A DNA stretch of 64,000 bases from NC_042116.1; one strand, 5' to 3'. Counted from the stretch's first letter, positions 1 through 19,814 are shown. The notes: generated by a model from the sequence alone, not told the origin. Program-made: numbers and translations.

Positions 1-100
1 CTATAGATGGATAGACTTCTGGCAGTAAAGATGTTCAGATGGATAGACGTATAGACCTCCATACATCTAGATGGATATGTGTCTGGACGTTTAGACGGCT
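1..100. repeat. Short direct repeats at the probable genome end
   Basis: AGATGGATA at 5, 37 and 69 (exact 32-bp period); TAGAC/TGGAC at 12, 44, 52, 84, 92. Confidence 0.7.
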
Positions 101-282
101 AAACCGATTTTAGTCTCGATTTTCCATTAGTTCCCCTTCCGCGTCTAGAAAGTTCTAGGCAGAATCGAAAGTCGTCTTTTCGTGTTGACAGAGCTATATT
201 ATCAAATGGGGTTAATGATTGCAAGGACTTTTTTCAATAAAAATAAATTTGACATCTGATTATATAATGTAGTACTATAGTA

Positions 283-332
283 TCAATCCAGCGAAATGGA
301 CTAACCCTATAGGGTGCCGAGATCCGCCTATT
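283..332 (+). ncRNA. Two-hairpin element E1 (candidate small RNA)
   Basis: tcca-GCGAAA-tgga ctaa accc-tata-gggt; behind TTGACA(249)-18-TACTAT(273). Confidence 0.55.
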
Positions 333-364
333 AATATATAAAAGCGAATGAGAATCATTACTAA

Positions 365-413
365 TTATAGTTATATTCCCGCACCCTCTAGGGTATCCGA
401 TTTCTCTCGTCTG
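365..413 (-). ncRNA. Two-hairpin element E2
   Basis: Minus strand cga-GAGAAA-tcg, accc-taga-gggt; promoter TTGTAT(447-442)-17-TATTAT(424-419). Confidence 0.5.
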
Positions 414-658
414 AAATAATAATATCAAAGTACCGAATAGAATACAAGGATTATTTTTGATTTTTATGAAAATAGTTCAAATCGATTTATACGTATAAAG
501 GAAAGGATTTAAAAGGCGTACAAAAAAGCGGGGTGAATGTATAGCAGTACTATAGAAACGCCGTGTAATGGTTCCTATGCATTGTGGTGGTATGAATACG
601 CATATAAAGGAAAGAAACTTATATAAGGAAAGTATTTGCAATGAATGAAAGAAAGTAC

Positions 659-686
659 TTGCAAAGGTTTAAGGTTATGATACTAT
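659..686 (+). promoter_or_regulatory. sigma70 promoter with extended -10
   Basis: TTGCAA-16-TGn-TACTAT, A-rich upstream, AGTACT overlapping the -35. Confidence 0.7.
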
Positions 687-706
687 CTATTTCGCCAACA
701 AGGAAA

Positions 707-718
707 CGCTCTTTAACA
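707..718 (+). promoter_or_regulatory. boxA antitermination element
   Basis: CGCTCTTTAACA matches the rrn/lambdoid boxA consensus; about 15 nt after the predicted start site. Confidence 0.65.
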
Positions 719-788
719 ACTTACCGGATGATTACTTGATAGTGATTCTTTACTTTAGAAATAAAGAAAAAGAAAAACGATAAAGTAC

Positions 789-816
789 TTGACGGCAAGA
801 AAGGAAAGTGTAGAAT
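789..816 (+). promoter_or_regulatory. sigma70 promoter
   Basis: TTGACG-16-TAGAAT, AGTACT overlapping the -35. Confidence 0.7.
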
Positions 817-820
817 GTTG

Positions 821-969
821 GTTATCGAAAGGCGGTCAGGTTCGCCGTATGATAGGTAAGGGTAACAGGGCAGAATACAGTACTGTTACAGAGTAGCCAG
901 AAGTGCTACTACAGCCTTATAAAAAGCTAACTAACAGTTAGTGACCTATTTACCGCCTAACGATATAAC
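821..969 (+). ncRNA. Candidate ~150-nt multibranch structured RNA
   Basis: Nested helices 821-827/961-969, 830-836/952-958, 852-857/944-949, 858-861/915-918, 862-868/883-889, 893-897/905-909, 927-932/936-941; starts at the predicted start site; no ORF. Confidence 0.55.
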
Positions 970-1001
970 GAAAAAAGTTTCTAAGAAGTTGAAAAAAGTA
1001 C

Positions 1002-1031
1002 TTGACTGATAGAAGCAAAACATAGTACGAT
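1002..1031 (+). promoter_or_regulatory. sigma70 promoter for the first gene
   Basis: TTGACT-18-TACGAT, AGTACT overlapping the -35. Confidence 0.6.
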
Positions 1032-1082
1032 GTATCCAAGCCAAACGGCTAATATAACCTAAACTTTTAAGAGGAATTACAA

Positions 1083-1736
1083 ATGACTACTACTAACACT
1101 GCAAAAGTATCTCGTGTAACTTTGAACTCAATCATTTTCGCCACTGCTCCAGTACTGGCAGCACCAGCCGAAGGTGAGACTCACAGTAAAGAAGTAATTG
1201 CACAACACAAATCGTCAATTGCTGAATTTGTATCAAATCAGGGTAAAGAGTTGGCTGGTTTTATTTTGGGTAAAGTTGAAACGCCTGATTTGATTATCGC
1301 GATTATCAAAGAAGCGGCGAAACAAATTCCAGCAGTACAAAAGCAACTGGCAGATGAAGCGGCAGTAATTGCACTTCAAGCAGAAGAACAGCGTGTTAAA
1401 GATGCTGAAGCGGCTGAATTGAAGCGGAAACAGGATGAAGCAGCATTGCAAGCTGAAAAAGACAAAATGCTTAAATTGTTAACTGACGGCGGTTTAGATT
1501 TGGCAATCGCTCAAACAATGGTAGCGGCTGGCCTTAAAGCAAAAGCTCCAGCTAATTCACCAAAAAACAGTTATGAGCGTGTCGCGGTAACCGTTGACGG
1601 TAAAGGCTACGATGTTCCAGTGCGGGGCAACATGAGCGAAGAATTGAAAGCTCTGGTAGCTAAAGATGGCGGGGATCGTGATGCATTTATCGCAAAATAC
1701 CGCAACGAACCAGCCGCACAAGAAGTTACTGAATAA
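1083..1736 (+). CDS. H-NS-like protein (divergent)
   Basis: RBS GAGGA; coiled coil then LLTDGGLD..AAGLKAK..PKNSY..G.....LK..V...G..RDAFIAK, paralleling the H-NS linker and C-terminal domain by eye. Confidence 0.55.
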   Translation: MTTTNTAKVSRVTLNSIIFATAPVLAAPAEGETHSKEVIAQHKSSIAEFVSNQGKELAGFILGKVETPDLIIAIIKEAAKQIPAVQKQLADEAAVIALQAEEQRVKDAEAAELKRKQDEAALQAEKDKMLKLLTDGGLDLAIAQTMVAAGLKAKAPANSPKNSYERVAVTVDGKGYDVPVRGNMSEELKALVAKDGGDRDAFIAKYRNEPAAQEVTE

Positions 1737-1884
1737 TATCTCAGTACTGTAATAATAGGGGGCAAACCAGCCCCCTAAGCCGTTCTAATAGTATTTTAAT
1801 ACTAACGTGTTATAGTACTATTAGAAACGCTTAAAAGTCTTTATAGAGCGTTTTATCTTATATCTTAAGTAAGGATAAACGCTT

Positions 1885-2154
1885 ATGCAATTAACCCCAA
1901 TATCTAATTTAATTGATAAAAATACTCGCATCGCTAAAACGATGACAGCCATTAGCAGAACAACATCGGTTTTTAATGGTTATCTTGCTTTTGTTGTTAA
2001 TGGTGAATTAGTACAACGTAGGATCTATGACATGGCATATAATAGTTTATATGATTCGTGTATGTATATAGTTCACAAGAAAGTTAATTATGCCGTTAAT
2101 CTTCCCTGTAAGCCTATTAGCGGAGCGTTTAACGCTGAATCACTAAAGGCATAA
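1885..2154 (+). CDS. Hypothetical early protein
   Basis: RBS AAGGA, followed by a terminator. Confidence 0.6.
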   Translation: MQLTPISNLIDKNTRIAKTMTAISRTTSVFNGYLAFVVNGELVQRRIYDMAYNSLYDSCMYIVHKKVNYAVNLPCKPISGAFNAESLKA

Positions 2155-2164
2155 GGTAACATAA

Positions 2165-2200
2165 AAAGCCCGTTAGAATAGCTCTGACGGGCTTTTTTTA
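2165..2200 (+). terminator. Rho-independent terminator
   Basis: gcccgttag/ctgacgggc stem followed by a T-tract. Confidence 0.8.
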
Positions 2201-2209
2201 TTTGTTGAA

Positions 2210-2242
2210 AGTACTTGTATTATAATCTCAGTACTGTATAGT
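2210..2242 (+). promoter_or_regulatory. Repeated early promoter cassette
   Basis: TTGTATTATAATCTCAGTACTGTA at 2215, 3477 and 4603; near-identical inverted copy at 3404-3432. Confidence 0.75.
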
Positions 2243-2276
2243 AACCGTTATCGAAACAACTGACGGACACAACAAA

Positions 2277-2939
2277 ATGAATGCATTTAAGTTAGAGCAG
2301 TATAGAATGACTTTGGAAGTACTGGAACAAATGAAAGATTGTTTAGACCGTGGCGAGACTTATACCACTGTTAAAGGCAAGCCGTTCAACGTTACAAGGC
2401 AATTCGGTATTTGCTGGCACGTGTACGCTCATACGCCTAACCAGAACGTGACAGGGATCGGCACTGACTTTATGTGTCCTGCTTTTGCTGATATGGGCTT
2501 AGATATAGCGTATCCGGTGGAGTGTCAAACAACTGGCAGCCGCGATCAAATGCGTCAGGCATTCAGTGTACAGCGTAACATGTATGACGACAACACGATC
2601 CACGGTGCAAACCGGATCAAGCTGGTGGATTCACTGATCCAGTACTACCGCGAAAAGATGGAAACGCCGATCACTGTTACCATGTATGAACATTATTACA
2701 ATCAAGCCTTGACAGAAATGAAAAGGCGTGATTCAGCTAATGAAGCCGTATGGGATGTTTTGGATTTTGAGAACAATCAGATCTGGCGTGAACTGGCGTT
2801 AAAGATTGTTGACGAAGATCCTACACTGTCAGAAGTGGATCACGCTGCTGGTATTAACTACCCTGATGATCTAACGTTGGAAAATGTAGTTACTACTAAC
2901 TTACAGGAACGAATCCGCGAAGCATTAGAAAAGTTATAA
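2277..2939 (+). CDS. Hypothetical early protein
   Basis: 220-aa ORF with its own promoter and RBS. Confidence 0.8.
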   Translation: MNAFKLEQYRMTLEVLEQMKDCLDRGETYTTVKGKPFNVTRQFGICWHVYAHTPNQNVTGIGTDFMCPAFADMGLDIAYPVECQTTGSRDQMRQAFSVQRNMYDDNTIHGANRIKLVDSLIQYYREKMETPITVTMYEHYYNQALTEMKRRDSANEAVWDVLDFENNQIWRELALKIVDEDPTLSEVDHAAGINYPDDLTLENVVTTNLQERIREALEKL

Positions 2940-2950
2940 TCTTTACAAAT

Positions 2951-2986
2951 AAGGGGTTGACGGTTCAATCCCTTTTATAGTACTAT
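2951..2986 (+). promoter_or_regulatory. Fused terminator-promoter cassette (also ~3246, 4481, 9137, 9751, 11188, 11595, 12111)
   Basis: GGGTTGAC-loop-GTTAACCC-TTTT type hairpin carries the -35; the -10 follows the T-tract. Confidence 0.8.
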
Positions 2987-3017
2987 GTAATCACACCAAA
3001 CGAAAGGGGTTACATAA

Positions 3018-3233
3018 ATGAGATTAAGTGAGATTAGAAAAGTACTGAAGGAACTTAACAAGCTGGCGAAAGAATCGGGGAACCTCGATCCAGATATTAA
3101 GTTTTGGAGTGATGATATGGACACTGATTTACTATTAGAACTTTGTCCTGCTGATGATCTCAGTGATTCAGTACTGAAAAGCGGTAATATTCAAATAAGA
3201 TTGAATGAAGTACTTAACCCAAAAGTTAGATAA
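3018..3233 (+). CDS. Hypothetical early protein
   Basis: Own promoter and RBS. Confidence 0.7.
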   Translation: MRLSEIRKVLKELNKLAKESGNLDPDIKFWSDDMDTDLLLELCPADDLSDSVLKSGNIQIRLNEVLNPKVR

Positions 3234-3285
3234 TCTTTACAATTGCGGGGGTTGACAGCCTCCGCTTTTTTATGGTACTATAATA

Positions 3286-3336
3286 TCAATCCAGAGAAAT
3301 GGACTAACCCTAGAGGGTGCCGAGATCCATCTATAG
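3286..3336 (+). ncRNA. Two-hairpin element E3
   Basis: tcca-GAGAAA-tgga, accc-taga-gggt; promoter TTGACA(3252)-18-TACTAT. Confidence 0.55.
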
Positions 3337-3349
3337 AAAATTTAGTCCT

Positions 3350-3398
3350 TAATAGATATAGTTCCGCACCCTCTAGGGTATCCAATTTCTCTTGTATA
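3350..3398 (-). ncRNA. Two-hairpin element E4
   Basis: caa-GAGAAA-ttg, accc-taga-gggt; promoter TTGTAA(3432-3427)-17-TACAAT(3409-3404). Confidence 0.5.
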
Positions 3399-3532
3399 TA
3401 AGTATTGTACAGTACTGAGATTATAATTACAAGGGGTAAACAGAAATAAAAATTAAAATTAAAACGAAAAAAGAACTTGTATTATAATCTCAGTACTGTA
3501 CAATTCTCTATATCGAAAACGGGAGAAATGAT

Positions 3533-3988
3533 ATGAATTCAAAACAGTTCCAAGATGCAACAAGAGAAACATTTTTAAAGTACTTTCCTCATGGTCACAT
3601 AAGCATTTCTATGTTGGCAATAGGTGGTGGTTGTAATATCTTTTGTGGCTTGATTGGAGACATTAATGATGTAGGTGGTAAGATCCGCATGAATGATCCT
3701 GTAACGGTACGGGCTTATATTCATGATAACTTTTCATTTAATGATGAAAGTACTGAATTGGAAAACGTTGTTATTGAGTTCGATGGTTCGTGGATCTCAG
3801 TACTGCCAGACAATCCGCATCATTATTGTCAATCCCACAAGGTGCCAAGTCGCAAGATTAACGCAGAACCTAAAAAGGCATTAAGTAATTTGGATAAGTA
3901 CTTTAAACGATTAAAGGACTGTGTAACAGAGCAAGCAGGATTAAATCGCATTATTCAGCAGGATAAGATCCCAGCGAAATATCTATAA
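3533..3988 (+). CDS. Hypothetical early protein
   Basis: Promoter and RBS GGGAG. Confidence 0.8.
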   Translation: MNSKQFQDATRETFLKYFPHGHISISMLAIGGGCNIFCGLIGDINDVGGKIRMNDPVTVRAYIHDNFSFNDESTELENVVIEFDGSWISVLPDNPHHYCQSHKVPSRKINAEPKKALSNLDKYFKRLKDCVTEQAGLNRIIQQDKIPAKYL

Positions 3989-4063
3989 TATATTGTCAAA
4001 AGTACTTGCATTGTATAAGCGAGTACTTTACAATAAGTTATCGTTAATTGAGAGGATTCGAAT

Positions 4064-4474
4064 ATGTTACATGTTAAAGGTTTTTCTGAGGGTGGTTATT
4101 GCTTTATGATTGGTGATAAGCCTGTTTCTGTTGTTGAAGCATTGCAGAAAAATGGTAAGAAATTTAACAAGAATACATTAAACGCTTTAAATAGAAATAA
4201 TCTTGCTAATGAAAGCGATCTTGTGTCATTTGAGTTACAAGTACAATCATTACATAAAGGATTAACACCTGAATATGTAATTCAAATTTTACGCAATGAA
4301 TATAATATTGATTTTAATAATGATTTTCATGAGTTAAGTTCTGCCAGCGTACTGGATTTATTAACAGTATATCATATTGCACAATATCGAGCACCCTCAC
4401 CATGTAATCGTGATGGTTCGCCAATGCGTTATTTTTACCAGTACTTACAACGCTTCATAGAAAAGAAAAAATAA
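4064..4474 (+). CDS. Hypothetical early protein
   Basis: Promoter and RBS GAGG. Confidence 0.75.
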   Translation: MLHVKGFSEGGYCFMIGDKPVSVVEALQKNGKKFNKNTLNALNRNNLANESDLVSFELQVQSLHKGLTPEYVIQILRNEYNIDFNNDFHELSSASVLDLLTVYHIAQYRAPSPCNRDGSPMRYFYQYLQRFIEKKK

Positions 4475-4520
4475 TCAAATAAGGGGTTGACTTCGGTTAA
4501 CCCTTTTTGCTATACTAATA

Positions 4521-4570
4521 TTACTCCAGAGAAATGGACTAACCTTATAAGGTGTATAAGTGTACCTATA
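4521..4570 (+). ncRNA. Two-hairpin element E5
   Basis: tcca-GAGAAA-tgga, acct-tata-aggt (compensatory change); promoter TTGACT(4487)-18-TATACT. Confidence 0.55.
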
Positions 4571-4662
4571 ATAAAATAATTAAAATTCATACAAAAAAGT
4601 ACTTGTATTATAATCTCAGTACTGTATAATTCTTTATATCGAAAACAAACGAGGGTTTTTAA

Positions 4663-5085
4663 ATGAGAACATGTAAAGAGTGTGGGAACAATTGCAACGT
4701 ATTATCTAATGGTGTTGTCCATCATTACAACGAGGATGATAAAATTGATTATGATCTAGATGGGGATCATGTTGCAATACCTGAATTATCTGATTCTGAA
4801 AACAACATGTTAAATCCAATTCTTCAAAGTACTTTTAATTTTAATGGTGATGTTCCTTGTATTAACTACGCCGCGAATGGTGGAGGTTATGAAACTTACC
4901 AGTACTTCATTTGTGCTGATGGTGGATGTTTAGGAATTGGAACAGTAATTAATGAGTTTCATAAAGTAAACTTTAATGATCCTGATGATAAACAATGGCA
5001 CATTGTAGGGGTTGACGTGAATTATGAAAATACTAATCTGATAGATGATCACACAGGGGATTATATACCAGTAGCATATAGTTAA
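4663..5085 (+). CDS. Hypothetical early protein with N-terminal CxxC
   Basis: Promoter and RBS. Confidence 0.75.
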   Translation: MRTCKECGNNCNVLSNGVVHHYNEDDKIDYDLDGDHVAIPELSDSENNMLNPILQSTFNFNGDVPCINYAANGGGYETYQYFICADGGCLGIGTVINEFHKVNFNDPDDKQWHIVGVDVNYENTNLIDDHTGDYIPVAYS

Positions 5086-5123
5086 CACTACAACGGGGAT
5101 CATTGATCCCCTTTTGAGGTTAT

Positions 5124-5384
5124 ATGAATTTGTTTTATAGTACTAGAAAATTAGTAGTTTCATTTGATTGTAATTCTGATAAAATACATTGTGTAATATA
5201 CAGAAAAGGAATTCCCCGTTCTGATAACTGGAAAGTACTACAATCCTATACAATCAAACGTAAAGGGTTTAAACAGTTAGATGACCGTACACAAAAGGCA
5301 TGTTTACGGCAAGTACTTAAAGCCATGCGTAACCGTATAACGCAAGCCTTACATGTTGCATTAACTACAAAAGATATTTTATAA
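5124..5384 (+). CDS. Hypothetical early protein
   Basis: RBS GAGG. Confidence 0.65.
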   Translation: MNLFYSTRKLVVSFDCNSDKIHCVIYRKGIPRSDNWKVLQSYTIKRKGFKQLDDRTQKACLRQVLKAMRNRITQALHVALTTKDIL

Positions 5385-5433
5385 TATAATGAAAAAGTAC
5401 TGGACAATGCTCCGGTACTTTGTTATAGTACTT

Positions 5434-5483
5434 ACATCGAAGAGAAATTCGAATAGCCCATAGGGTTCAGGGGTATATCTATT
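5434..5483 (+). ncRNA. Two-hairpin element E6
   Basis: tcgaa-GAGAAA-ttcga, gccc-ata-gggt (G-U pair); promoter TGGACA(5401)-17-TATAGT. Confidence 0.5.
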
Positions 5484-5570
5484 AAAAATAATTAAAATTA
5501 AAATGAAAAAGAACTTGCATTATATTATGGTTATGGTAATATATGTATATCGAAACGGGAGGTTAAAGAA

Positions 5571-5639
5571 ATGAAACTACGTTATCAATGGCTGTTGTTT
5601 GCTTTGTTTATCCTTATTACCTGCGTAAACTTTGATTAG
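5571..5639 (+). CDS. 22-aa hydrophobic peptide MKLRYQWLLFALFILITCVNFD
   Basis: First ORF after a promoter, RBS GGGAGG; below the ORF-track cutoff. Confidence 0.55.
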   Translation: MKLRYQWLLFALFILITCVNFD

Positions 5640-5649
5640 GGGTTATATT

Positions 5650-5991
5650 ATGATGATTGTTAATTTTGGTGATGATATCAATTTCAATAGTATTAAGCAT
5701 ATTATTGAAAATAGTCAATCTGTATCTATTACTTTATGTTCTGGCGATGGTGATGATTTTACGGTGATAGAGCGTGAAAGAAGTAAATTTGCTGGTTTTC
5801 ATGAGGCTGATCTTATTGTTATTAGTACTGTACGGAATGCTAATGGTGATGGTATCTATGTATATCCTGAATACTTCACTATTGAACAGGCAGACACTGC
5901 TATTGAAGCCTTAAAAATAAGGGCGAGTGATACTAACATTAAATCATCTGAATTATCGGATTCATTAACTGATTTATTAGAATCGGAATAA
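5650..5991 (+). CDS. Hypothetical early protein
   Basis: ORF track, start trimmed to the RBS. Confidence 0.7.
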   Translation: MMIVNFGDDINFNSIKHIIENSQSVSITLCSGDGDDFTVIERERSKFAGFHEADLIVISTVRNANGDGIYVYPEYFTIEQADTAIEALKIRASDTNIKSSELSDSLTDLLESE

Positions 5992-6056
5992 CATATTAAA
6001 AGTACTTGCATTATATTAGCGAGTACTTTATAATAAGTTATCAAGTGAGGTACACA

Positions 6057-6104
6057 ATGAAATGGTTAATTATAGCAGTACTGATTTACATTATCTTTTT
6101 TTAA
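6057..6104 (+). CDS. 15-aa hydrophobic peptide MKWLIIAVLIYIIFF
   Basis: First ORF after a promoter, RBS GAGG. Confidence 0.45.
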   Translation: MKWLIIAVLIYIIFF

Positions 6105-6123
6105 TCAAGAGGAAGTATTAAAA

Positions 6124-6333
6124 ATGGCACATAAAGATCGTCGTTACAATGTTAACCCTGAATTTACCGGACACGAATCAGGCAAGAAACAATTTGTTAT
6201 TCGTTTTTGTGGTGATTTTGTTTCTTCGCATTCAAAGCGTGATGAAGCAGAAAAAGAGATCGCCCGATGGAAAAGTACTGGAACCGTTCCACATATCGGA
6301 AAGCAATGGGATAATCTAGTTGAACCTGTTTAA
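6124..6333 (+). CDS. Hypothetical early protein
   Basis: RBS GAGG, terminator downstream. Confidence 0.7.
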   Translation: MAHKDRRYNVNPEFTGHESGKKQFVIRFCGDFVSSHSKRDEAEKEIARWKSTGTVPHIGKQWDNLVEPV

Positions 6334-6395
6334 TTAATCAATATTAATAGTACTGGATATTTCACCAGTACTGTTTTTTTATACAGCATAATATA

Positions 6396-6446
6396 TAATA
6401 GATACATTTTCGCACCCTGTGGGTCAAAGACATTTCGCTGTCTATG
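6396..6446 (-). ncRNA. Two-hairpin element E7
   Basis: gaca-GCGAAA-tgtc, accc-aca-gggt; promoter TTGACA(6480-6475)-17-TATTAT(6457-6452). Confidence 0.55.
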
Positions 6447-6568
6447 AAGTAATAATACAGTATTTTGATATACGTGTCAAGGATTAAATTAAAATTAAAA
6501 CAAAAGAAAGTACTTGCATTAAGTATGAAGTACTGTATAATCTTTTATATCGAAACGGGAGAATTAAA

Positions 6569-6835
6569 ATGAGTAACGCATTGAAAGCCATGATTTCGTT
6601 GGTAATTTCAGTACTGATAACCTTTATAATATTAACTGCGGCGAGAGATGATGTTCTGTGGCGGTTAACCATGTTAGGATATGAAATTGAAGATACATGG
6701 TATTCTTTTTTGACATATGGCCTTAATGGGATATATGCTATATTAATGGTAGGTTGTTTTTATATTTTGTTTTGTTTAATGTTTTATATTACAGGGGGCA
6801 GTAATGAGAGTACAACCAATCCAGCCAATCATTAA
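6569..6835 (+). CDS. Small membrane protein (2 TM)
   Basis: Two hydrophobic segments; promoter and RBS. Confidence 0.7.
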   Translation: MSNALKAMISLVISVLITFIILTAARDDVLWRLTMLGYEIEDTWYSFLTYGLNGIYAILMVGCFYILFCLMFYITGGSNESTTNPANH

Positions 6836-6974
6836 GTTAGCGAATAGTACGGTCAAGAATGAATATTCAAAAATTGTTGTTGACATTCCGTGTAGTACTG
6901 TGGTATCATTAGGTTCTTACAAATCGTGTGATTTGTATAATTCAATTTATAAACAATAAAAGGTAAATTTAAAT

Positions 6975-7832
6975 ATGGGTAAGTTCATTAGTTATGGTAT
7001 TCTTGCGATTATTGTATTCGTTGGCTTGGGTGCATTGTTTGGTTCGTGGTACACGGTTGATCAGCAAGATCGTGGGGTAGTACTAACGAATGGTAAAATT
7101 ACCAGTATTGCAGAACCTGGTTTGAACTGGAAAATGCCATTTATGGATTCTGTTGTACAAATTCCAGTCACTGGACAAAATAAAAGTTATTCGAATCTAA
7201 AAGCATATAGCCGAGATCAACAACCGGCAGATATGACTATTTCTGTATCATTCTCAGTCCCAGCGGCTAAGGTAGGGGAATTATATAGTACTTTTGGTGA
7301 TATTGACAATCTAACTACTCGTGTTATTGATCGTCAAGTACCACAAGCTGTTGAAAATGTTTTTGGTCAGTTTAATGCGATTTCAGCAGTACAAGATCGT
7401 AATAAGTTAGTTACTAACTTAAACATTGCAATTAAAAAGGCAATGGAAAACTACCCAGTAGTAATTGAGAGTGTACAGGTTGAAAACCTATCATTCAGTC
7501 CAGCATATGAAAAATCAATTGAAGAACGTATGCAAGCAGAGATCGCAGTTACAAAGCGTGAACAGGACTATGCACAGGCTAAAATTTCAGCATCTATCAC
7601 AGTTGCGAATGCACAAGCTGACGCTGATAGCCAGTTAGCAAAGGCAACGGCAGCAGCTAAAGCAACACGCCTACAGGGTGAAGCTGATGCAGCAGCAATT
7701 AAGGCGAAGTCCGAAGCACTAAACAATAATCCACAACTTGTACAGTTGGCGGCGGTGGATAAATGGGATGGTGTACTACCTACTCAAATGGTTCCATCTG
7801 CTACAGTGCCGTTTGTGAATCTAAACAAATAA
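6975..7832 (+). CDS. SPFH/band-7 (prohibitin-like) membrane protein
   Basis: N-terminal TM, YTVDQQDRGVV..GK, EPGLNWKMPF, coiled-coil tail, KWDGVLP. Confidence 0.9.
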   Translation: MGKFISYGILAIIVFVGLGALFGSWYTVDQQDRGVVLTNGKITSIAEPGLNWKMPFMDSVVQIPVTGQNKSYSNLKAYSRDQQPADMTISVSFSVPAAKVGELYSTFGDIDNLTTRVIDRQVPQAVENVFGQFNAISAVQDRNKLVTNLNIAIKKAMENYPVVIESVQVENLSFSPAYEKSIEERMQAEIAVTKREQDYAQAKISASITVANAQADADSQLAKATAAAKATRLQGEADAAAIKAKSEALNNNPQLVQLAAVDKWDGVLPTQMVPSATVPFVNLNK

Positions 7833-7842
7833 GTACTATCAC

Positions 7843-7871
7843 AAAAAGCCTCGCATTGTCGAGGCTTTTTA
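7843..7871 (+). terminator. Rho-independent terminator
   Basis: gcctcg/cgaggc stem flanked by A- and T-tracts. Confidence 0.75.
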
Positions 7872-7964
7872 TTATCTGAATAATTAAAATTAAAACGTAA
7901 AAAGTACTTGCATTGCATGAGCGAGTACTTTATAATACTTACATCAACCACAAGAGGCAACAAC

Positions 7965-8321
7965 ATGAAAACTGAATTTTTCGCGACAAGAACACTGGCA
8001 CGTAACGCGGTAGAAGCTCTTAATGGTAAGTTTAAAGATTTTGGTAAAGATGCTCCTACTGGTGAACGTTGGGGGGTGCTGGTGGATGAAGTACTACCAG
8101 TACAAAAGGAACAACCTGTACTTGCAGAAGAAAAAAGTAATCTTGACGTACACCTTGATTTTCTTAGTACTGTAGCAGAAGATGCAGCAAAAGCATTGAA
8201 TCAGCCAACTGGCATTCGTGGGGAACAAACGTTAACAACACCAAATAAGAAGCCTGTACGGGTTATGTGGCGTCGTTCAATTGTGGCGGTACGTTTGTCG
8301 GCACTACTGGCAAAATCGTAA
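7965..8321 (+). CDS. Hypothetical early protein
   Basis: RBS GAGG at the trimmed start. Confidence 0.75.
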   Translation: MKTEFFATRTLARNAVEALNGKFKDFGKDAPTGERWGVLVDEVLPVQKEQPVLAEEKSNLDVHLDFLSTVAEDAAKALNQPTGIRGEQTLTTPNKKPVRVMWRRSIVAVRLSALLAKS

Positions 8322-8370
8322 CACAAACCAGTGGGGGCGGTATAATGCCCCCTTTATTAATCGAGATCAT

Positions 8371-8613
8371 ATGAAAAAAGTTAAAGTTGATAATACACAA
8401 TTACGCATACATTTCAAGGCACAAACAAAAGTACTTGATAAGGCTATTCGTATTGTGAAAGATTATAATAATGGAAGTGTTAGAGCTAGACGGTTAGGGT
8501 GTGGTTTATTTTCAGTAATAGATGTATCACATAACGAACGGATCGTTATTAAAAATAAAACACTTAATTTAATGACTCATGAACAATATAATAAATTCGT
8601 CGAACGACGTTGA
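8371..8613 (+). CDS. ParE/RelE-like small protein
   Basis: Basic 80 aa; pattern RR......S.DV....RIV.....LMTHEQYN recalls the plasmid/ICE ParE-like family. Confidence 0.4.
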   Translation: MKKVKVDNTQLRIHFKAQTKVLDKAIRIVKDYNNGSVRARRLGCGLFSVIDVSHNERIVIKNKTLNLMTHEQYNKFVERR

Positions 8614-8669
8614 CATAATCCCCTAAATATGTATAATAATAATTATACACGATTAGGGGATTTTTTATT

Positions 8670-9131
8670 ATGCCTGATAAATTTAAACATAAGAATGGTG
8701 CTACTATAGCAGGTCATGCCGATAAGTGGAGTGATGAAAATCGTTCAAGTACTAGCCATGATGCAGGTCAAGGCAGTAAAGGAAGTAGAAATCAAGGTAC
8801 AGGAATTAAAGGTAAACAAAACGCAATGCCATCACAAGGTATTGATACATCCAAAATGGATAAGTCCGAAAAATTAAAGTACTTTAATTCATTGGGTTTA
8901 CTTCAACCAAAACAAGAATTATCTATTAAAACATGGCCTGAAACATTACGCAAAGTGTTTAAAGATGAACCTGTATACATTAAAGATATTACTACAGCGA
9001 TAAAATCTATTGAACCAGCAAGATATCAACAAGCCATTCAATCAGCATTCAATGCTTATAACGAAATTACAAAACAATCAGATGATGTTTATGATATATA
9101 TGCCGCAATTATGCAAGCATTACAAGGTTAA
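8670..9131 (+). CDS. Hypothetical protein
   Basis: TTGACA-17-TATAAT promoter upstream. Confidence 0.65.
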   Translation: MPDKFKHKNGATIAGHADKWSDENRSSTSHDAGQGSKGSRNQGTGIKGKQNAMPSQGIDTSKMDKSEKLKYFNSLGLLQPKQELSIKTWPETLRKVFKDEPVYIKDITTAIKSIEPARYQQAIQSAFNAYNEITKQSDDVYDIYAAIMQALQG

Positions 9132-9197
9132 AAATAAGGGTTGACTTAGGTTAACCCTTTTGCTATTGTATCAGTACACAAACATAAGGAATATATT

Positions 9198-9548
9198 ATG
9201 AAAAAGTTATTATTACTCGCTGCATTGTTTAGTACTACAGTTTCAGCTCAAACATTTACATGTGATAACTTTACTCTGTATCAAGGTATCGGGAATAATC
9301 AATACAGACAAGTAGATGATGCAGGTGTACAATCATCTTTGATTATTACTATTGAAAGTACTGAACCATTGATTACCGTTTCTGTACAAGGTGATAAAGA
9401 AGTAGTGCAATTCTGGAAAGATTATAATGTATACAGAAATGTAACTGGTGAAATTTCACAAGATGGTAATAATTTTATAATGAAAACAGCTATACAAGAT
9501 AGTACTGGATTTTATATACCTGTTAAAATTGAGTACCATTGTAAATGA
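9198..9548 (+). CDS. Exported protein with signal peptide
   Basis: MKKLLLLAALFSTTVSA signal sequence. Confidence 0.75.
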   Translation: MKKLLLLAALFSTTVSAQTFTCDNFTLYQGIGNNQYRQVDDAGVQSSLIITIESTEPLITVSVQGDKEVVQFWKDYNVYRNVTGEISQDGNNFIMKTAIQDSTGFYIPVKIEYHCK

Positions 9549-9742
9549 AATTATCATTTCAATTTATGCAAAAACGTGTACAGTACTTAAGTACTAAACT
9601 TAAAGCATCATTTGAATTACAATATACTATTAACCAGAATTATCATTTAATGAAGAATGGAAGATTCATTGTTATGGATCAACCGCTTGAAGTACTGGAA
9701 ATAGTAGTAAGTGCATTATTAAGTAATAACATTAAAAAATAA
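9545..9742 (+). CDS. Hypothetical protein
   Basis: 4-nt overlap with the upstream gene. Confidence 0.55.
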   Translation: MKLSFQFMQKRVQYLSTKLKASFELQYTINQNYHLMKNGRFIVMDQPLEVLEIVVSALLSNNIKK

Positions 9743-9787
9743 TTAAATCAAGGGTTGACAGATGTTAACCCTTTTTGCTATACTACT

Positions 9788-9838
9788 ATCAATCCAGCGA
9801 AATGGACTAACCCTATAGGGTGTATAGTTATGTCAGTA
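9788..9838 (+). ncRNA. Two-hairpin element E8
   Basis: tcca-GCGAAA-tgga, accc-tata-gggt; promoter TTGACA(9755)-18-TATACT. Confidence 0.55.
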
Positions 9839-9947
9839 CTTTTATTATATGCATAGAAAAAAGAATTTAAAATTAAAATGAAAAAGTACTTGTGTTAGAT
9901 GCTGGAACTGATAGAATGTAGTTATTGAAACAACGGGAGTAAATGAA

Positions 9948-10187
9948 ATGGCTAATAAAGAAGTGGAATTTAAAATTAGAAAATGGTCAGATACTAACGG
10001 TCGTCCATTTGATGTAGTGCTGGTGGATCATTTAAAGAACAATCAGCATTTTCAGCCTAATGTTGAATTTAGTACTATCGAACATGCTGAAAAGCATATG
10101 GAAACTTTGAATACTTTAATTCAAAATCATCCTGACCGTATCAACTTTATTCGTGACCATTGGCCTGTTGATGCTGGTATAGAATAA
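9948..10187 (+). CDS. Hypothetical early protein
   Basis: Promoter and RBS GGGAG. Confidence 0.7.
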   Translation: MANKEVEFKIRKWSDTNGRPFDVVLVDHLKNNQHFQPNVEFSTIEHAEKHMETLNTLIQNHPDRINFIRDHWPVDAGIE

Positions 10188-10270
10188 AAATTAAAACGTA
10201 AAAAGTACTTGACTATATCAGTTGAGTACTTTAAAATAGAATCTTAATTAACGCAATAGGAAACTAAATC

Positions 10271-11164
10271 ATGAAAATGTACAAAGGCATCGCAGGTAAA
10301 GCAATCAAAGAAAACCGTCCACTGCTAAGATCAGAACTGGAATTAGTTGTTCCATCTATCTTTTCAAGTACTGGTCACGAATCACGTTCAGCCCGTTTTG
10401 CACCTGTTGCAACCATCGACGTTGTAGACCGTTTAGCAAAAGAAGGTTATCAACCATTCTTTGCTATTCAGTCCAATGTACGTGACGAATCTAAACGCGA
10501 ATTCACTAAGCATATGCTGCGTTTCCGTCAACATGATGGCAAAACATCCGGCGAATCTAATGAGATCATTCTCGTTAACGCAAATGATGGAACAAGTGCA
10601 TACCAATTAATGGCTGGTCAATTCCGTTTCGTTTGTGCTAATGGTCTGGTTATGGGTAACATGCAACATAACACAAAAATCTATCACAAAGGTAACAATA
10701 TCATGGATGACGTGATCGAAGGCGTCTATTCAGTAGTGAAAGATTTTGATAACATTGAACGTTATAAAGATGAAATGCAACTAATACAACTCAATGATAT
10801 CGAACGTAAAACGTTTGCAACTGCTGGTTATCTCATGAAAGAGGGTATGCCGGAATCAGGTTCAATGGATGACTTTGTATATAATCCATTACAACTATTA
10901 TCACGTTCAGGTCTAAACAGTCAAGACCAGTACGATAATAGTTTGTATAGTACTTTTAATACTGTACAACAACACTTAATCAACGGTGGTCAACGCTCAT
11001 TCATGGAAGATCGTAATGGTCGTACTCGCCGCCGGTCAAGCCGTAGCGTTACTAATATCAATAAGAACATTGATATCAATAGTAACTTATGGCAACTCGC
11101 TACCGCTCTGGTAGAGAAGAATACTAAGGTAGTGCATGATATCGTTGATGCACAATTAGCATAA
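10271..11164 (+). CDS. DUF932-family protein (plasmid leading-region / cryptic-prophage type)
   Basis: PSIFS...HESRSARF....T..V...L..EGYQPFFAIQS..RD..KREFTKHMLRFR; IILVNANDGTSAYQLMAGQFRFVCANGLV. Confidence 0.85.
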   Translation: MKMYKGIAGKAIKENRPLLRSELELVVPSIFSSTGHESRSARFAPVATIDVVDRLAKEGYQPFFAIQSNVRDESKREFTKHMLRFRQHDGKTSGESNEIILVNANDGTSAYQLMAGQFRFVCANGLVMGNMQHNTKIYHKGNNIMDDVIEGVYSVVKDFDNIERYKDEMQLIQLNDIERKTFATAGYLMKEGMPESGSMDDFVYNPLQLLSRSGLNSQDQYDNSLYSTFNTVQQHLINGGQRSFMEDRNGRTRRRSSRSVTNINKNIDINSNLWQLATALVEKNTKVVHDIVDAQLA

Positions 11165-11252
11165 AAAATAAGTACTAAAATCATATAAGGGGTTGACTTA
11201 GGTTAACCCCTTTTGCTATACTTATTTTATCGAAACAAACGAGGGTTAGTAA

Positions 11253-11588
11253 ATGTTAGATGTATATGTAAGTTCTGATTTAGTTTCAAATGGTAGAAAT
11301 GAATTCGGTACTGAACAAGAAAAAACAGAGTACTACATCATTGCAGAATCTCTAAATGGTCAACGTATTAGATTAGATAGTGTGTCAGTTGTTAATAGAG
11401 AATACACTGATACACAATGTACTGAGTACTTAGAACGTGTAGTTACAAAGATTAAAAATCATTTAGCTGGTGGCGGTAAGTTGAATCAAGATTGTTGGTA
11501 CGAAATAGATCCTTGCTATGGTTCACAACGTTATATCGATTTGGATAGTACTGGTTACTTTTATCAACGTGAGAAACTCGAAGATTAA
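11253..11588 (+). CDS. Hypothetical early protein
   Basis: Promoter and RBS. Confidence 0.75.
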   Translation: MLDVYVSSDLVSNGRNEFGTEQEKTEYYIIAESLNGQRIRLDSVSVVNREYTDTQCTEYLERVVTKIKNHLAGGGKLNQDCWYEIDPCYGSQRYIDLDSTGYFYQREKLED

Positions 11589-11659
11589 TAATAATGGGGT
11601 TGACTATAGTTAGCCCCTTTTGTTATAATTCTTATACACCATCACGAAAGGAAAGAAAC

Positions 11660-11857
11660 ATGACCAGAGAAGAAAGAATTGAAGCCGCTCATAAAGTACT
11701 GTCATACAAACATCTTGAAATGATGGAAGCTATGGAAAGAGTACTAGGCACGTTTGGCGAAGAAAATAAAGATAAATTCGCCGCCGTATATGATGAAGTT
11801 GAAAACATTCTTTATCCGCATGGTGCGGGTGAAGATGCAGTATACTGCGAAAATTAA
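11660..11857 (+). CDS. Hypothetical early protein
   Basis: RBS AAGGA at the trimmed start. Confidence 0.65.
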   Translation: MTREERIEAAHKVLSYKHLEMMEAMERVLGTFGEENKDKFAAVYDEVENILYPHGAGEDAVYCEN

Positions 11858-11918
11858 TAATTGACAAACTCTGTCAGTACTGATATACTGGCAGAATATT
11901 AAATCAGAGGATACAATC

Positions 11919-12101
11919 ATGGTTCAAGTAGATATGACTGAATTGCGGAAACGTTGGTATGATCTGGCACGTTCAGGTACTGCTATCACTGGTGATAATA
12001 GAACGCTTTTCAATACACTTGATGGCTGGCAACGTCAAGAATTAAAAAATGCATATCTTAAAGGTATGACAGATGAAGTGCAAGCATGGGATGAAGCATA
12101 A
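11919..12101 (+). CDS. Hypothetical early protein
   Basis: Promoter and RBS GAGGA. Confidence 0.65.
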   Translation: MVQVDMTELRKRWYDLARSGTAITGDNRTLFNTLDGWQRQELKNAYLKGMTDEVQAWDEA

Positions 12102-12147
12102 TTAAAAATAAAGGCTTGACTTAGGTTAAGCCTTTTGCTATAGTACT

Positions 12148-12198
12148 ATCAATGCAGCGAAATGCACTAACCCTATAGGGTGCGGAGCTATGTCTGTA
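12148..12198 (+). ncRNA. Two-hairpin element E9
   Basis: tgca-GCGAAA-tgca (compensatory change), accc-tata-gggt; promoter TTGACT(12116)-17-TATAGT. Confidence 0.55.
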
Positions 12199-12288
12199 AA
12201 AGATATTAAAATTCAAATGAAAAGTACTTGACCTATATAGCTGGTGGATGATATATTATTAGTACTGGATGCAACCGAGGGCAATACT

Positions 12289-12561
12289 ATGAAAGTTACT
12301 ACACTGATTAAAAAGTTGTTTGGTCAAGACGCAATCGCTGATTATATGGAAGTACTGGAAGAAGATGAAAAACAATCAGTACTCCAGTACTATACAATTC
12401 AATCAGATGAAGATGCAAGTGAACCAGATTACTTTGTTAAGTTATGGCAGGATGGATTGTATACTGTCAAAAACATTAACGGTGAAGTTATCGTGAATAC
12501 ATATAATGTAAGATTACTAAAAGAAAAGTTAAAAGTACTTGCAAACAATCATAAGGTTTAG
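12289..12561 (+). CDS. Hypothetical early protein
   Basis: RBS GAGG at the trimmed start. Confidence 0.65.
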   Translation: MKVTTLIKKLFGQDAIADYMEVLEEDEKQSVLQYYTIQSDEDASEPDYFVKLWQDGLYTVKNINGEVIVNTYNVRLLKEKLKVLANNHKV

Positions 12562-12626
12562 TATTATATATACATCGAACGGGGACAGGGAACATAATGT
12601 TACCGCCTGATTCGGGAGATTCAATC

Positions 12627-13076
12627 ATGAGCGACTTAACTACTTCCCTGCTTTCACTGGCTAAAAACAACGGCGGCAACTTCAAATCAGAAAAGCAATC
12701 TGCTATGTTTAATAGTCTGGCAAGTAATGGTGTGTTAGTTCTCGCTGGTGGATCTGTATATGGTAACACATGGTCATATGAGTTTATCATTGATAGTACT
12801 GGTGTTGTATCAGTCAATAAACTATCTTATAGCAAAGCTGGTGTTGCCAGTACTGAAGCTATGTTCTCACGCGATGGTACTGTTCAGGCTGACCGTAAAG
12901 TTGCACAGGATGATAAGAATACTAAACGTATCAAGCGTGAGATTAAAGGGCTTGAGAAACGTATCAAGCAACGTCAAGCAGAGTATGATGCTGGTCAGTA
13001 TCCCGATGCTGAAATGTTTAATAAAGCTCAGAGAGAAGATAGAGATAATTTGGAAGAGTACCAAGCAATGTTATAA
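12627..13076 (+). CDS. Hypothetical early protein with C-terminal coiled coil
   Basis: RBS GGAG at the trimmed start. Confidence 0.75.
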   Translation: MSDLTTSLLSLAKNNGGNFKSEKQSAMFNSLASNGVLVLAGGSVYGNTWSYEFIIDSTGVVSVNKLSYSKAGVASTEAMFSRDGTVQADRKVAQDDKNTKRIKREIKGLEKRIKQRQAEYDAGQYPDAEMFNKAQREDRDNLEEYQAML

Positions 13077-13141
13077 AGTACTTGACATTTATTAAAGCCA
13101 CTGTCATAATGTCGGTGGCTTAGTCTATTGAGGAATAGCAT

Positions 13142-13342
13142 ATGTTTAATGTAGTAGGTTGTTTAGGGTGTACCATTGGTAGTGCAGCGTCAGTCGATGA
13201 AGCTATCACACTGGTACGTTCACAGGTGCCAGTAGGTAAGAAGAAGCAGAGCACCATGCGTAACGCTCTCTCTACGCTACGCCAAGGCCAGCAGTACCAT
13301 GTAGACTATGGTCATTCAGGGGTAACCGTAGAGCGGCTATAG
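13142..13342 (+). CDS. Hypothetical early protein
   Basis: TTGACA promoter and RBS GAGGA. Confidence 0.65.
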   Translation: MFNVVGCLGCTIGSAASVDEAITLVRSQVPVGKKKQSTMRNALSTLRQGQQYHVDYGHSGVTVERL

Positions 13343-13554
13343 GTAAGCTGTACGCTGTTATATGGCATTTTTAATTTAATTCAAAAAATATTTTATACAG
13401 AATAAAAGTACTTGACTTTTGAAATGAGTAAGGGATACCTTAACTTTTCTGTATAAAATATGTTTGGACTATGCAAAATTTTTTTGCTTACTAAAGGCCA
13501 GTAACGCTTAGCACCCCTATAATCGGGGTATATGTATTACAATAGGAGTAAACT

Positions 13555-14211
13555 GTGGAAGAACCACACACATTACATTTGATCTGGAATAGGCGTAGAA
13601 ATGAAGCTATGCGAAAATATCACGGTGATGGTATAGACAAACCCGTACTTAAACATATCTTCCATGATGTACACCAATCTGATTACTATACTGAATTATT
13701 ACACTACGGGTCACAATTAATTAATTTAAGTACTATTATTATGCCACAGGTATCAATAGTAACAAGTTGGTTCGGAACGATAGGACAGATGGAAATTCCA
13801 TTAGAAAATGAAGTTACTTTTAGCATATACACTGATGGAAATGATGATGCATTAATACTTTCAAAAAAAAGCAATAGAATTTTTCAGTTATTCTTGAGGT
13901 CTAAGAATGCTCATCAGCATGAAATAATGTACGGTAACAACTTCATTGGTAATGACCTAATAGTACTACAAGGTGAACATGTCAATTACGCAGTGAATGT
14001 TAATATAGATACCGAGTTATCAAAAGCAGTTAAAATGGAAACCAAGAAACTCCCAATACAATACAGTACTTCTATAATATATGGTATAACGAATGAACTA
14101 TTATTTTTATATCATATGGATCATATGGATGATACAAATGTGTATTTTAATTTTATACATAGTGCATTATCATCATTAACAATAGAATGCACAAGAAGAG
14201 GTTATATGTAA
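13555..14211 (+). CDS. Hypothetical protein, weak member of the FQxxT paralog array
   Basis: GTG start with AGGAG; LPIQYST variant of the motif. Confidence 0.7.
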   Translation: MEEPHTLHLIWNRRRNEAMRKYHGDGIDKPVLKHIFHDVHQSDYYTELLHYGSQLINLSTIIMPQVSIVTSWFGTIGQMEIPLENEVTFSIYTDGNDDALILSKKSNRIFQLFLRSKNAHQHEIMYGNNFIGNDLIVLQGEHVNYAVNVNIDTELSKAVKMETKKLPIQYSTSIIYGITNELLFLYHMDHMDDTNVYFNFIHSALSSLTIECTRRGYM

Positions 14212-16009: not shown

Positions 16010-16025
16010 AGAAATATTTAAAGTT

Positions 16026-16571: not shown

Positions 16572-16677
16572 ATAAATGTTCTCTAAAAAATAGTTGTATA
16601 AAAAATGGTCAAAAAAAATTCCGCTTCTAATATTTAATATCAAGATAAAATGGCGGGGCGAGGGGAGCGGCGGGGTG

Positions 16678-17795: not shown

Positions 17796-17796
17796 A

Positions 17797-19786: not shown

Positions 19787-19806
19787 AAGTACTATCAAGG
19801 ATGATA

Positions 19807-19814
19807 TATAAATA
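19807..19814 (+). promoter_or_regulatory. T4-type late promoter
   Basis: TATAAATA about 50 nt upstream of the 19866 start. Confidence 0.45.

Follow-up and report, generated by a model that had tools for sequence, protein, structure and literature searches.

Promoter-linked two-hairpin elements in the terminal-repeat region of RaK2-like jumbo phages

What is the function of the short two-hairpin sequences that recur, each directly behind its own promoter and with no open reading frame (ORF) after it, at the left end of the genome of Yersinia jumbo phage fHe-Yen9-04 (NC_042116.1, 354,378 bp, genus Eneladusvirus)? We analysed bases 1–64000 of this genome (hereafter, the window), in which an earlier note had pointed out nine such elements. 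The first 13 kb of the window are 100% identical to bases 1–13000 of fHe-Yen9-04 and, over parts, 81–97% identical to fHe-Yen9-03, the Erwinia pEa_SNUABM phages and Serratia phage BF, all of which, like fHe-Yen9-04, are RaK2-like jumbo myoviruses. RaK2-like jumbo phages have genomes of 345–380 kb and infect Klebsiella, Escherichia coli, Yersinia, Serratia, Erwinia and Pectobacterium, with several being considered for therapy or biocontrol. The elements constitute a real, so far undescribed family of promoter-linked motifs. We estimate at roughly 0.8 the probability that each copy forms the first ~50–55 nt of an RNA that host sigma70 polymerase transcribes from the fused promoter, that the folded sense strand, most simply as RNA, is functional, and that the copies are part of an early, promoter-dense left-end module of RaK2-like genomes. 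Wherever the terminal repeat has been mapped, this module is the long direct terminal repeat.

A motif family defined by covariation and promoter coupling

A regular expression derived from the earlier description retrieved nine sites in the 64 kb, all as reported and none extra, with the G(A/C)GAAA loops starting at positions 291, 3294, 4529, 5442, 9797 and 12157 on the plus strand and at 406, 3391 and 6438 on the minus strand. A looser pattern (GAAA-N6-8-RCCY-N3-4-RGGTK-N6-T) also matched nine times, compared with 0.04 ± 0.20 matches in 100 dinucleotide shuffles, and two covariance models recovered all nine copies and no tenth one in the 64 kb, even at E ≤ 1. In the public annotation, positions 1–14000 contain only small hypothetical genes and ribosome-binding sites, with no entry at the elements.

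The copies can be aligned over ~54 nt and consist of about 8 nt, hairpin 1, a linker of 2–4 nt, hairpin 2, a G, a fixed 8-nt spacer and a Y-R-Y-C-Y-A box. The anatomy described earlier stood overall, but the linker is shorter than the 4–5 nt given there, stem 1 comprises 3–5 bp, and the motif described as 'CTAT' corresponds to the box after the fixed spacer. Hairpin 1 of the window copies carries the loop G(A/C)GAAA on its 3–5-bp stem; across copies, the loops are purine-rich and 6–7 nt long (G(A/C)GAAA, AGAACAA or AGAUAAA). Hairpin 2 has the form (A/G)CCC-N3-4-GGGT.

The compensatory base changes reported in the earlier note, with stem 1 kept paired and stem 2 covarying, were found in the window and hold in relatives. 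Among 86 distinct copies, hairpin 1 is paired in 96.5% of cases, exclusively by Watson–Crick pairs, and displays double-sided changes at all four pairs (for instance UA, GC, CG and AU at the outermost one). Hairpin 2 is almost invariant (CCC/GGG); compensatory changes are seen in two independent variants (ACCT/AGGT and ACTC/GAGT), the closing pair may be G.U, and the loop has 3 or 4 nt. The two-hairpin structure contains 105 double-sided cells versus 26 ± 4 after shuffling, with none of 500 shuffles reaching as high, in alignments that derive from covariance models and are hence biased toward the modelled structure. Control structures obtained by sliding were 13–45% paired, and a smaller set of 47 copies gave the same picture. 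Structural support for the element comes from this covariation, not from folding energy. The compensatory changes show that selection acts on the fold itself and, together with the G.U pairs and the 3- or 4-nt loops, argue for a folded sense single strand rather than a protein-binding site on duplex DNA.

Conservation extends beyond hairpin 2 and ends at about +17. Scored in 49 non-redundant copies, the positions after GGGT read G (47/49), S, N, R, A (41/49), R, N, T (49/49), N, Y, R, Y, C (45/49), Y, A, with a pyrimidine at +10 and a purine at +11 in all 49. The interval between hairpin 2 and the box is essentially free of insertions and deletions, in contrast to the variable linker and loops, and the tails after the box are A/U-mixed. 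The YRYCY part of the box is wobble-complementary to GGGUG, formed by the 3' arm of hairpin 2 and the next G, which would give a third helix (helix 3) of 5 bp with an 8-nt loop. Helix 3 is 96–97% paired, all its variation consists of pairing-compatible transitions, and RNAalifold predicts it unaided on a MAFFT alignment, at only −1.64 kcal/mol. It is less well supported than hairpin 1: double-sided changes are lacking, and an A.C mismatch results in the ACTC/GAGT variant. Since helix 3 and hairpin 2 exclude each other, a two-state switch is possible.

The claim that each copy, on either strand, lies behind its own consensus sigma70 promoter was borne out, promoters being taken as consensus matches. 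A sigma70-type −35/−10 pair is present at all 89 distinct copies examined, with the −10 ending 0–2 nt upstream of the element. In 75 of them, it fits TTGnnn-16..19-TAnnnT, ending 0–2 nt ahead of the model start; the other 14, mainly the minus partners of convergent pairs, have TTGnnn-17-(C/G)ATAAT, mostly after a TGn extended −10. In the window, the promoter scan placed a TTGACA/TTGACT-17/18-TATACT-like promoter abutting seven copies, the other two being preceded by TTGTAT-17-TATTAT and TTGTAA-17-TACAAT. This 1:1 fusion of promoter and element is kept in four genera. Assuming the usual 7 nt from the −10, the RNA is predicted to start 1–3 nt upstream of hairpin 1. The −35 lies within the terminator-like hairpin of the upstream gene in at least four plus-strand copies (3282 and 9785 by scan, 4517 and 12145 as read from the sequence); in 54 of the 89 copies, the 51 nt ahead of the element have a folding energy of ≤ −8 kcal/mol, and the minus-strand copies are without a terminator.

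Individually, copy 1 (279–332, plus strand, 69.1 bits) is directly abutted by the −10 of its sigma70-type promoter (249–278, plus, TTGACA-18-TACTAT) and comprises hairpin 1 at 287–300 (TCCA-GCGAAA-TGGA), hairpin 2 at 304–315 (ACCC-TATA-GGGT), the G at 316, the invariant T at 323 and the box CGCCT at 325–329. Across a 33-bp gap it converges with copy 2 (366–418, minus, 58 bits), the promoter of which (419–447, minus, TTGTAT-17-TATTAT) was read from the sequence. Copy 3 (3282–3335, plus, 73 bits), with a promoter at 3252–3281 (plus, TTGACA-18-TACTAT) whose −35 is within the terminator hairpin of the upstream gene (3245–3265), converges across a 15-bp gap with copy 4 (3351–3403, minus), and the promoter of the latter (3404–3432, minus, TTGTAA-17-TACAAT) is back to back with that of the gene at 3533. 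Copy 5 (4517–4570, plus; promoter 4487–4516, plus, TTGACT-18-TATACT, with the −35 in a terminator hairpin) carries the compensatory hairpin-2 variant ACCT/AGGT. Copy 6 (5430–5483, plus; promoter 5401–5429, plus, TGGACA-17-TATAGT) has a 5-bp hairpin 1 (TCGAA/TTCGA) and a hairpin 2, GCCC-ATA-GGGT, with a G.U pair and a 3-nt loop. Copy 7 (6397–6450, minus) heads toward a bidirectional terminator at 6346–6375, its promoter (6452–6480, minus, TTGACA-17-TATTAT) being divergent from that of the gene at 6569. Finally, the promoters of copy 8 (9785–9838, plus; promoter 9755–9784, plus, TTGACA-18-TATACT) and copy 9 (12145–12198, plus, 74 bits; promoter 12116–12144, plus, TTGACT-17-TATAGT) both have the −35 within a terminator hairpin, that of copy 8 located at 9750–9773; hairpin 1 of copy 9 is TGCA/TGCA.

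Distribution, terminal repeats and convergent pairs

The covariance model built from the nine window copies, run on the window and on the left ends of five relatives, gave 57 matches, nine of them in the window, and the second model gave 99 matches (86 distinct) in 16 loci at E ≤ 0.01, plus 11 in coliphage fEgEco12 at E ≤ 1. Element-bearing phages belong to the genera Eneladusvirus, Mimasvirus (CBB, XbC2), Alcyoneusvirus (Muenster) and Asteriusvirus (fEgEco12), and are joined by metagenomic contigs of 355–371 kb. An exact-pattern scan of IMG/VR yielded 37 stretches, among which only those from jumbo contigs or fragments thereof pass the model; about 20 singleton stretches in other contigs fail it and are chance matches. 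The element core is conserved across the four genera while the flanks fall to 72–80% identity. The covariance-model search of phage genomes that the earlier note had suggested thus returned about 100 copies across the clade. The element belongs to no known Rfam family: Rfam 15 gave no match at the gathering score in the 64 kb, and none of 17 weak matches at E ≤ 10 on positions 1–13000 overlaps an element. No blastn match was found in 72,556 plasmids (PLSDB) or, with the coliphage copy as query, in 5,426 complete E. coli genomes. Our literature searches retrieved no published description of the element; promoters and terminators are all that the CBB paper lists. The covariance model is ready to be used for annotating RaK2-like genomes and locating their terminal-repeat module.

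The window copies are confined to positions 279–12198, with none in the following 52 kb. In the three phages with an annotated or measured long direct terminal repeat, every copy lies within the repeat: at 2449–18812 in Muenster (PhageTerm-annotated repeat, 1–20030), at 982–20935 in CBB (repeat, 1–22456) and at 1084–19593 in fEgEco12, whose 20,993-bp repeat has been reported as confirmed by restriction digestion. The covariance model detected no element in the last 50 kb of Serratia phage BF, though many TTGAC-type promoter-like sites are present there, and the exact major-type pattern had no match in the full 354-kb contig beyond the four window sites that fit it. In the window, 16 of the 17 promoters of the 'AAAGTACTTG' class lie in the first 13.4 kb; they stop at ~13400–14000, where the G+C content drops from 0.33–0.40 to 0.28–0.30. 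These two limits, along with the extent of the repeat in relatives, suggest that the right boundary of the fHe-Yen9-04 direct terminal repeat is probably near 13.4–14 kb. The end-repeat region bearing the elements probably enters the cell first. The expression upon entry proposed earlier is plausible, given the location of the copies in a probable direct terminal repeat dense in sigma70-type promoters. With approximately 10 promoters per terminal repeat being marked by one conserved, covarying structure, the element is likely central to the earliest phase of infection.

Convergent pairs are a recurrent arrangement, with 18 of them in 9 of 10 genomes. Of the 18 pairs, 13 are spaced by 15 bp and one each by 14 and 19 bp; at the left-end locus of Eneladusvirus, the partners are 33 bp apart. 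Pairs occupy syntenic positions, no more than ~1.4 kb in from the left end of each record and at 2–4 kb, and CBB and one metagenomic relative have a further pair close to the right end of the repeat. The pairs form ~120-bp imperfect palindromes, and the read-through RNA across them folds at −47 to −53 kcal/mol in four of the five tested (z-scores, −5.5 to −7.8). For copies 3 and 4, the values are −47.5 kcal/mol on the plus strand (z, −7.8) and −52.6 kcal/mol on the minus strand (z, −7.2), and for the left-end pair (copies 1 and 2) −34 kcal/mol (z, −2.8).

This arrangement bears on the possibility that the elements act as DNA, with transcription or an R-loop exposing the non-template strand, so that the hairpins or cruciform-capable pairs serve in replication priming, recombination between the repeats, their duplication or packaging, or site-specific nicking. 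We regard such a role as unlikely. It would account for all copies found sitting in the terminal-repeat region, for the syntenic pairs with their fixed gaps, for a hairpin 1 built of Watson–Crick pairs only and for the AT-rich DNA that follows the plus copies; the ORF-less promoters phiOL and phiOR of T7 and the promoter-plus-unwinding-element origins of T4 are precedents, and the part comprising hairpin 2 and the box bears a loose likeness to a relaxase nic region. However, the G.U-rich helix 3 makes sense in RNA only, origins or processing sites would hardly be expected in nine to twelve copies per repeat, promoters that converge instead of diverging are ill-suited to bidirectional origins, and neither a similar sequence among the 72,556 plasmids nor a nuclease or Rep partner was identified. 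Likenesses to the origin promoters T7 phiOL/phiOR and T4 oriF/oriG include the absence of a dependent gene, the AT-rich DNA downstream and a location in or near terminal repeats, but those promoters are phage-specific or of middle mode, few per genome and without conserved covarying hairpins.

The same read-through folds could instead be RNase III sites in longer alternative mRNAs of which the element is the 5' end, with hairpin 1, beginning 1–3 nt from the predicted start, blocking 5'-end-dependent decay. Such a stabilising role is consistent with the lack of a terminator ahead of the next gene and with the strength of the folds across the pairs, but it accounts neither for the invariance of hairpin 2 nor for the fixed spacer and the box; moreover, the minus copies have no downstream gene and each gene already has its own promoter, so that we consider it rather improbable.

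Comparison of fHe-Yen9-04 and fHe-Yen9-03 over window positions 1–16000 showed gene cassettes swapped, inserted or deleted, with the breakpoints in repeated promoters, elements and 5' leaders; a 3.1-kb indel in fHe-Yen9-03 has a promoter-plus-element copy on each side, where the window has one (copy 8). Because the breakpoints fall at repeated units, the units act like recombination substrates of the PeSL type and are apparently the substrate for a shuffling of cassettes that diversifies the accessory genes of the module. Could the hairpins then be mere passengers, without function of their own, of a recombination-prone cassette spread by duplication? The positions of the breakpoints, the copy number (5 in a partial locus versus 8–12 in repeat-spanning loci) and the PeSL-like embedding of promoters in terminators speak for this, but compensatory changes in hairpins 1 and 2 point to selection on the fold and the core is kept across four genera with flanks at 72–80% identity, which makes it very improbable.

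A transcriptional pause or an early small RNA

The reading that we favour, at a probability of about 0.3, is that the element works in cis as a 5' leader RNA, pausing or modifying the host RNA polymerase that transcribes it. Transcription from the elements, the pause and any effects on termination or neighbouring promoters are predicted here from sequence features. Hairpin 1 would cap the 5' end of the RNA and display its purine-rich loop. After hairpin 2, the polymerase would reach the pyrimidine/purine step 10 nt further on, with G at −10, which is the geometry of a hairpin-stabilised pause, and would be held ~45 nt downstream of each element promoter. Such a pause could allow time for the elongation complex to be modified or loaded, with the polymerase parked at a junction of gene cassettes, until the emerging YRYCY box pairs with GGGUG as helix 3, melts hairpin 2 and frees the polymerase. 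Should the element pause or reprogram host RNA polymerase in this way, it would represent a new type of cis-acting elongation signal. The module is rich in intrinsic terminators and some genes (e.g., that at 5124) lie behind a terminator without a promoter of their own; the canonical boxA at 707–719 fits the use of terminator read-through in the module.

Transcriptional pause signals are multipartite (PMC6336406). In sequence, the element partly recalls the hairpin-stabilised his-type pause, combining a hairpin with a 10-nt spacer that bears G at the putative −10 (47/49) and a Y/R step (49/49). The hairpin of the canonical signal ends 10–12 nt upstream of the pause, with G at −10, Y at −1 and G at +1. 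The element differs in having a 4-bp stem and no coupled translated leader.

Several observations weigh against the pause reading. The purine after the putative pause step is A in 29 of the 49 copies and the consensus G in only 20, and position −11 is U. A few copies lack hairpin 1 (CBB 8450, Muenster 17200). Folding z-scores of 0 to −1.3 make the hairpins, with stems of only 3–5 bp, thermodynamically unremarkable, and the hairpins therefore probably depend on a partner or a special context. Every tandem plus copy is followed by a second promoter, so that no gene is obviously dependent on the element. Three of the nine window copies are aimed away from genes and two window pairs are convergent, a poor fit to processive antitermination, and an ordinary boxA occurs elsewhere in the phage and none in the elements. 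Our literature searches found no transcriptome for any member of the RaK2-like clade.

The fate of the transcripts is central to the main rival of the pause, the proposal that the elements are trans-acting early small RNAs. In the window, ORF and terminator scans placed neither an ORF nor an intrinsic terminator directly after any element. The four tandem plus copies are followed by an A/T-rich UP-like stretch and, 29–50 nt on, by a second promoter of the 'AAAGTACTTG' class driving the next gene, a layout repeated in relatives, and a promoter of this class also stands back to back with each of the minus copies at 3351 and 6397. The earlier observations that no ORF follows and that the next gene has a separate promoter are thereby upheld for the window. 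By contrast, the stand-alone transcripts of 50–100 nt suggested in the same note are not apparent: only copy 7 (6397–6450, minus) meets a terminator-like hairpin, ~75 nt past the end of the element, whereas plus copies run on into the next promoter and gene and convergent partners run into each other.

Abundant RNAs of ~50–100 nt could nevertheless arise if their 3' ends were set by processing, by collision of polymerases or by a terminator close by, as for copy 7, and their conserved core and loop might titrate a host defence or regulatory protein or a phage protein. The absence of a following ORF, the 9–12 copies per repeat, the indifference to orientation, which suits a trans product, and the end of conservation at about +17 after hairpin 2 agree with this, as do a 5'-terminal hairpin that would stabilise a small RNA and the toxin/antitoxin-like and accessory genes of the region (ParE-like and DUF932; YeeU-like, YafQ-like and a kinase in Muenster). 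We find the proposal doubtful, since most copies have no terminator or defined 3' end, the folding is weak, one promoter per ~55-nt unit is a costly design for a sponge, and there is no candidate partner: GGA/GGAG loops are not universal, and no CRISPR-repeat or other Rfam match was obtained. A decoy function would make the element a novel RNA-based device for takeover or anti-defence. More broadly, and tentatively, the family may represent either a new class of multi-copy early RNA confined to the terminal-repeat region and serving as protein decoys in trans, for anti-defence or host takeover, or transcription-exposed single-strand signals that organise the replication or processing of the ~13–22-kb repeat; in both cases, the pairs spaced by 15 bp would be a dedicated unit.

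Known systems and other features of the left-end module

The elements resemble the lambdoid nut and HK022 put sites in position and possibly also in logic. As with nut, a small hairpin with a purine loop lies just past an early promoter in a terminator-rich region, and the loop sequence varies between phages or copies. Unlike nut, no element has a boxA (CGCUCUU(U)A) within or beside it, even with one mismatch; an invariant second hairpin and a box are added; and one third of the copies are antisense or convergent. Hairpin 1 agrees with boxB only in part, having purine-rich loops of 6–7 nt on a 3–5-bp stem where boxB has a ~5-bp stem and a GNRA-like pentaloop. An N-like arginine-rich protein is not known in these phages; Pfam comparison of 20 of the 26 small ORFs at 1083–13342, without a dedicated search, gave ParE-like and DUF932 matches only. 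The put sites of HK022 are ~65–75-nt elements with long bulged stems, two per phage and all in the direction of the genes. They share with the element two adjacent stem-loops right after an early promoter (at a fixed distance from the −10 in 89/89 distinct copies) and possible action in cis without an ORF, but the element has stems of 3–5 bp, a unit of ~54 nt, 9–12 copies against the two put sites per phage, and both orientations.

Among mobile or cassette-like sequences, REP/BIME (REPIN) units are likewise short, extragenic and palindromic, often in inverted pairs at fixed spacing, but REPs are promoter-free and number hundreds per host chromosome, while the element is unmatched in the 5,426 E. 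coli genomes; we know of no RAYT-type transposase in element-bearing phages. The PeSL of T4-type phages is a composite terminator/early-promoter cassette (PMC2839356, PMC4122927). It similarly fuses a terminator stem-loop to a sigma70 early promoter and is located between small accessory genes, at indel boundaries of sister phages; however, PeSL ends in a Shine–Dalgarno sequence and a start codon, whereas our unit is an ORF-less two-hairpin structure that also occurs terminator-free on the minus strand. Given that the defining features of nut, put, PeSL, intrinsic terminators, REP and Rfam families were lacking and that the position of nut and put is shared, we rate the element as a variant of a promoter-proximal structured leader or early non-coding RNA.

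Other candidates were considered, and most of them rejected, on specific grounds. The terminator scan called no element as an intrinsic terminator, the tail being A/U-mixed with no U tract directly after the hairpin. A dimeric operator on double-stranded DNA at the ACCC..GGGT palindrome is incompatible with the 3- or 4-nt centre, the G.U variants and the covariation of hairpin 1. For a leader mini-ORF (Shine–Dalgarno-like GGGUG, NUN at +7..+9 and 'MYL-stop' in some copies), G is present at +9 in only 23/49 and the conservation is not codon-like. Aligned copies show by eye no consistent TAnnnT for a sigma70-dependent pause via a transcribed −10-like hexamer, and loop motifs of the CsrA (GGA) or RegB (GGAG) kind are confined to some lineages. 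Besides helix 3, there is no consistent third hairpin within +1..+17, and loop–box pseudoknots lack covariation. ARAGORN and Rfam were negative for tRNA-like and ribozyme motifs. The loose likeness of hairpin 2 and the box to plasmid oriT/relaxase nic sites has no blastn match in PLSDB, and a host origin finds no match in E. coli genomes. As to an RNA anti-CRISPR, a solitary unit mimicking a CRISPR repeat of the host, no Rfam CRISPR-DR family matched at E ≤ 10, and the variable stem 1 argues against repeat mimicry. Pfam was uninformative regarding a partner protein among the neighbouring ORFs, the DUF932 protein having no relative of solved structure.

The only exact boxA in the 64 kb (707–715) belongs to a non-element promoter. 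At 663–719 (plus), TTGCAA-17-TACTAT is followed, ~7 nt past the −10, by CGCTCTTTAACAA, a near-perfect boxA of the rrn/lambda type; the unit is conserved at the corresponding position in BF, CBB, XbC2, Kaldavass and metagenomic relatives, which suggests Nus-factor antitermination of the leftmost rightward transcript. It is part of a 660-bp non-coding leader (420–1083) ahead of the first gene, with three promoters of the 'AAAGTACTTG' type (~654, 784 and 997), two of them ORF-less. At the left end of the record (5–77, plus), AGATGGATA is directly repeated three times, at 5, 37 and 69 (32-bp period); its reverse complement, ATCCATCTA, is identical to the box of the copy at 3282. The repeats may mark the terminus or serve in packaging; alternatively, their match to the box may be coincidental.

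The accessory genes include those for a ParE-like toxin-domain protein (8371–8613), a DUF932 protein (10271–11164) and an SPFH/Band 7 protein (6975–7832; assignment taken from the record annotation), all on the plus strand; Pfam gave no match for the other 18 of the 20 module ORFs scanned. The Muenster repeat encodes YeeU-like and YafQ-like genes and a kinase. Unannotated ORFs for hydrophobic peptides of 22 and 15 amino acids (5571–5639 and 6057–6104, plus) lie between a promoter and the annotated genes at 5650 and 6124, respectively. Before the gene at 8670, a perfect-consensus promoter (8610–8670, plus, TTGACA-16-TATAAT) is located within a hairpin (CCCCTAA...TTAGGGG) followed by a T run, an attenuator-like arrangement. 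The palindrome AGTACT occurs 254 times in the window versus ~21 expected, and CAGTACTG 21 times versus 0.5 expected, in promoters, hairpins and coding sequence alike. Finally, the leader of the gene at 3018 (2957–3017, plus; GTAATCACACCAAACGAAAGGGG) resembles by eye a degenerate hairpin-1 region, and XbC2 and Kaldavass have a near-identical promoter and GTAATCAC/GTATTCAC leader ahead of a full element.

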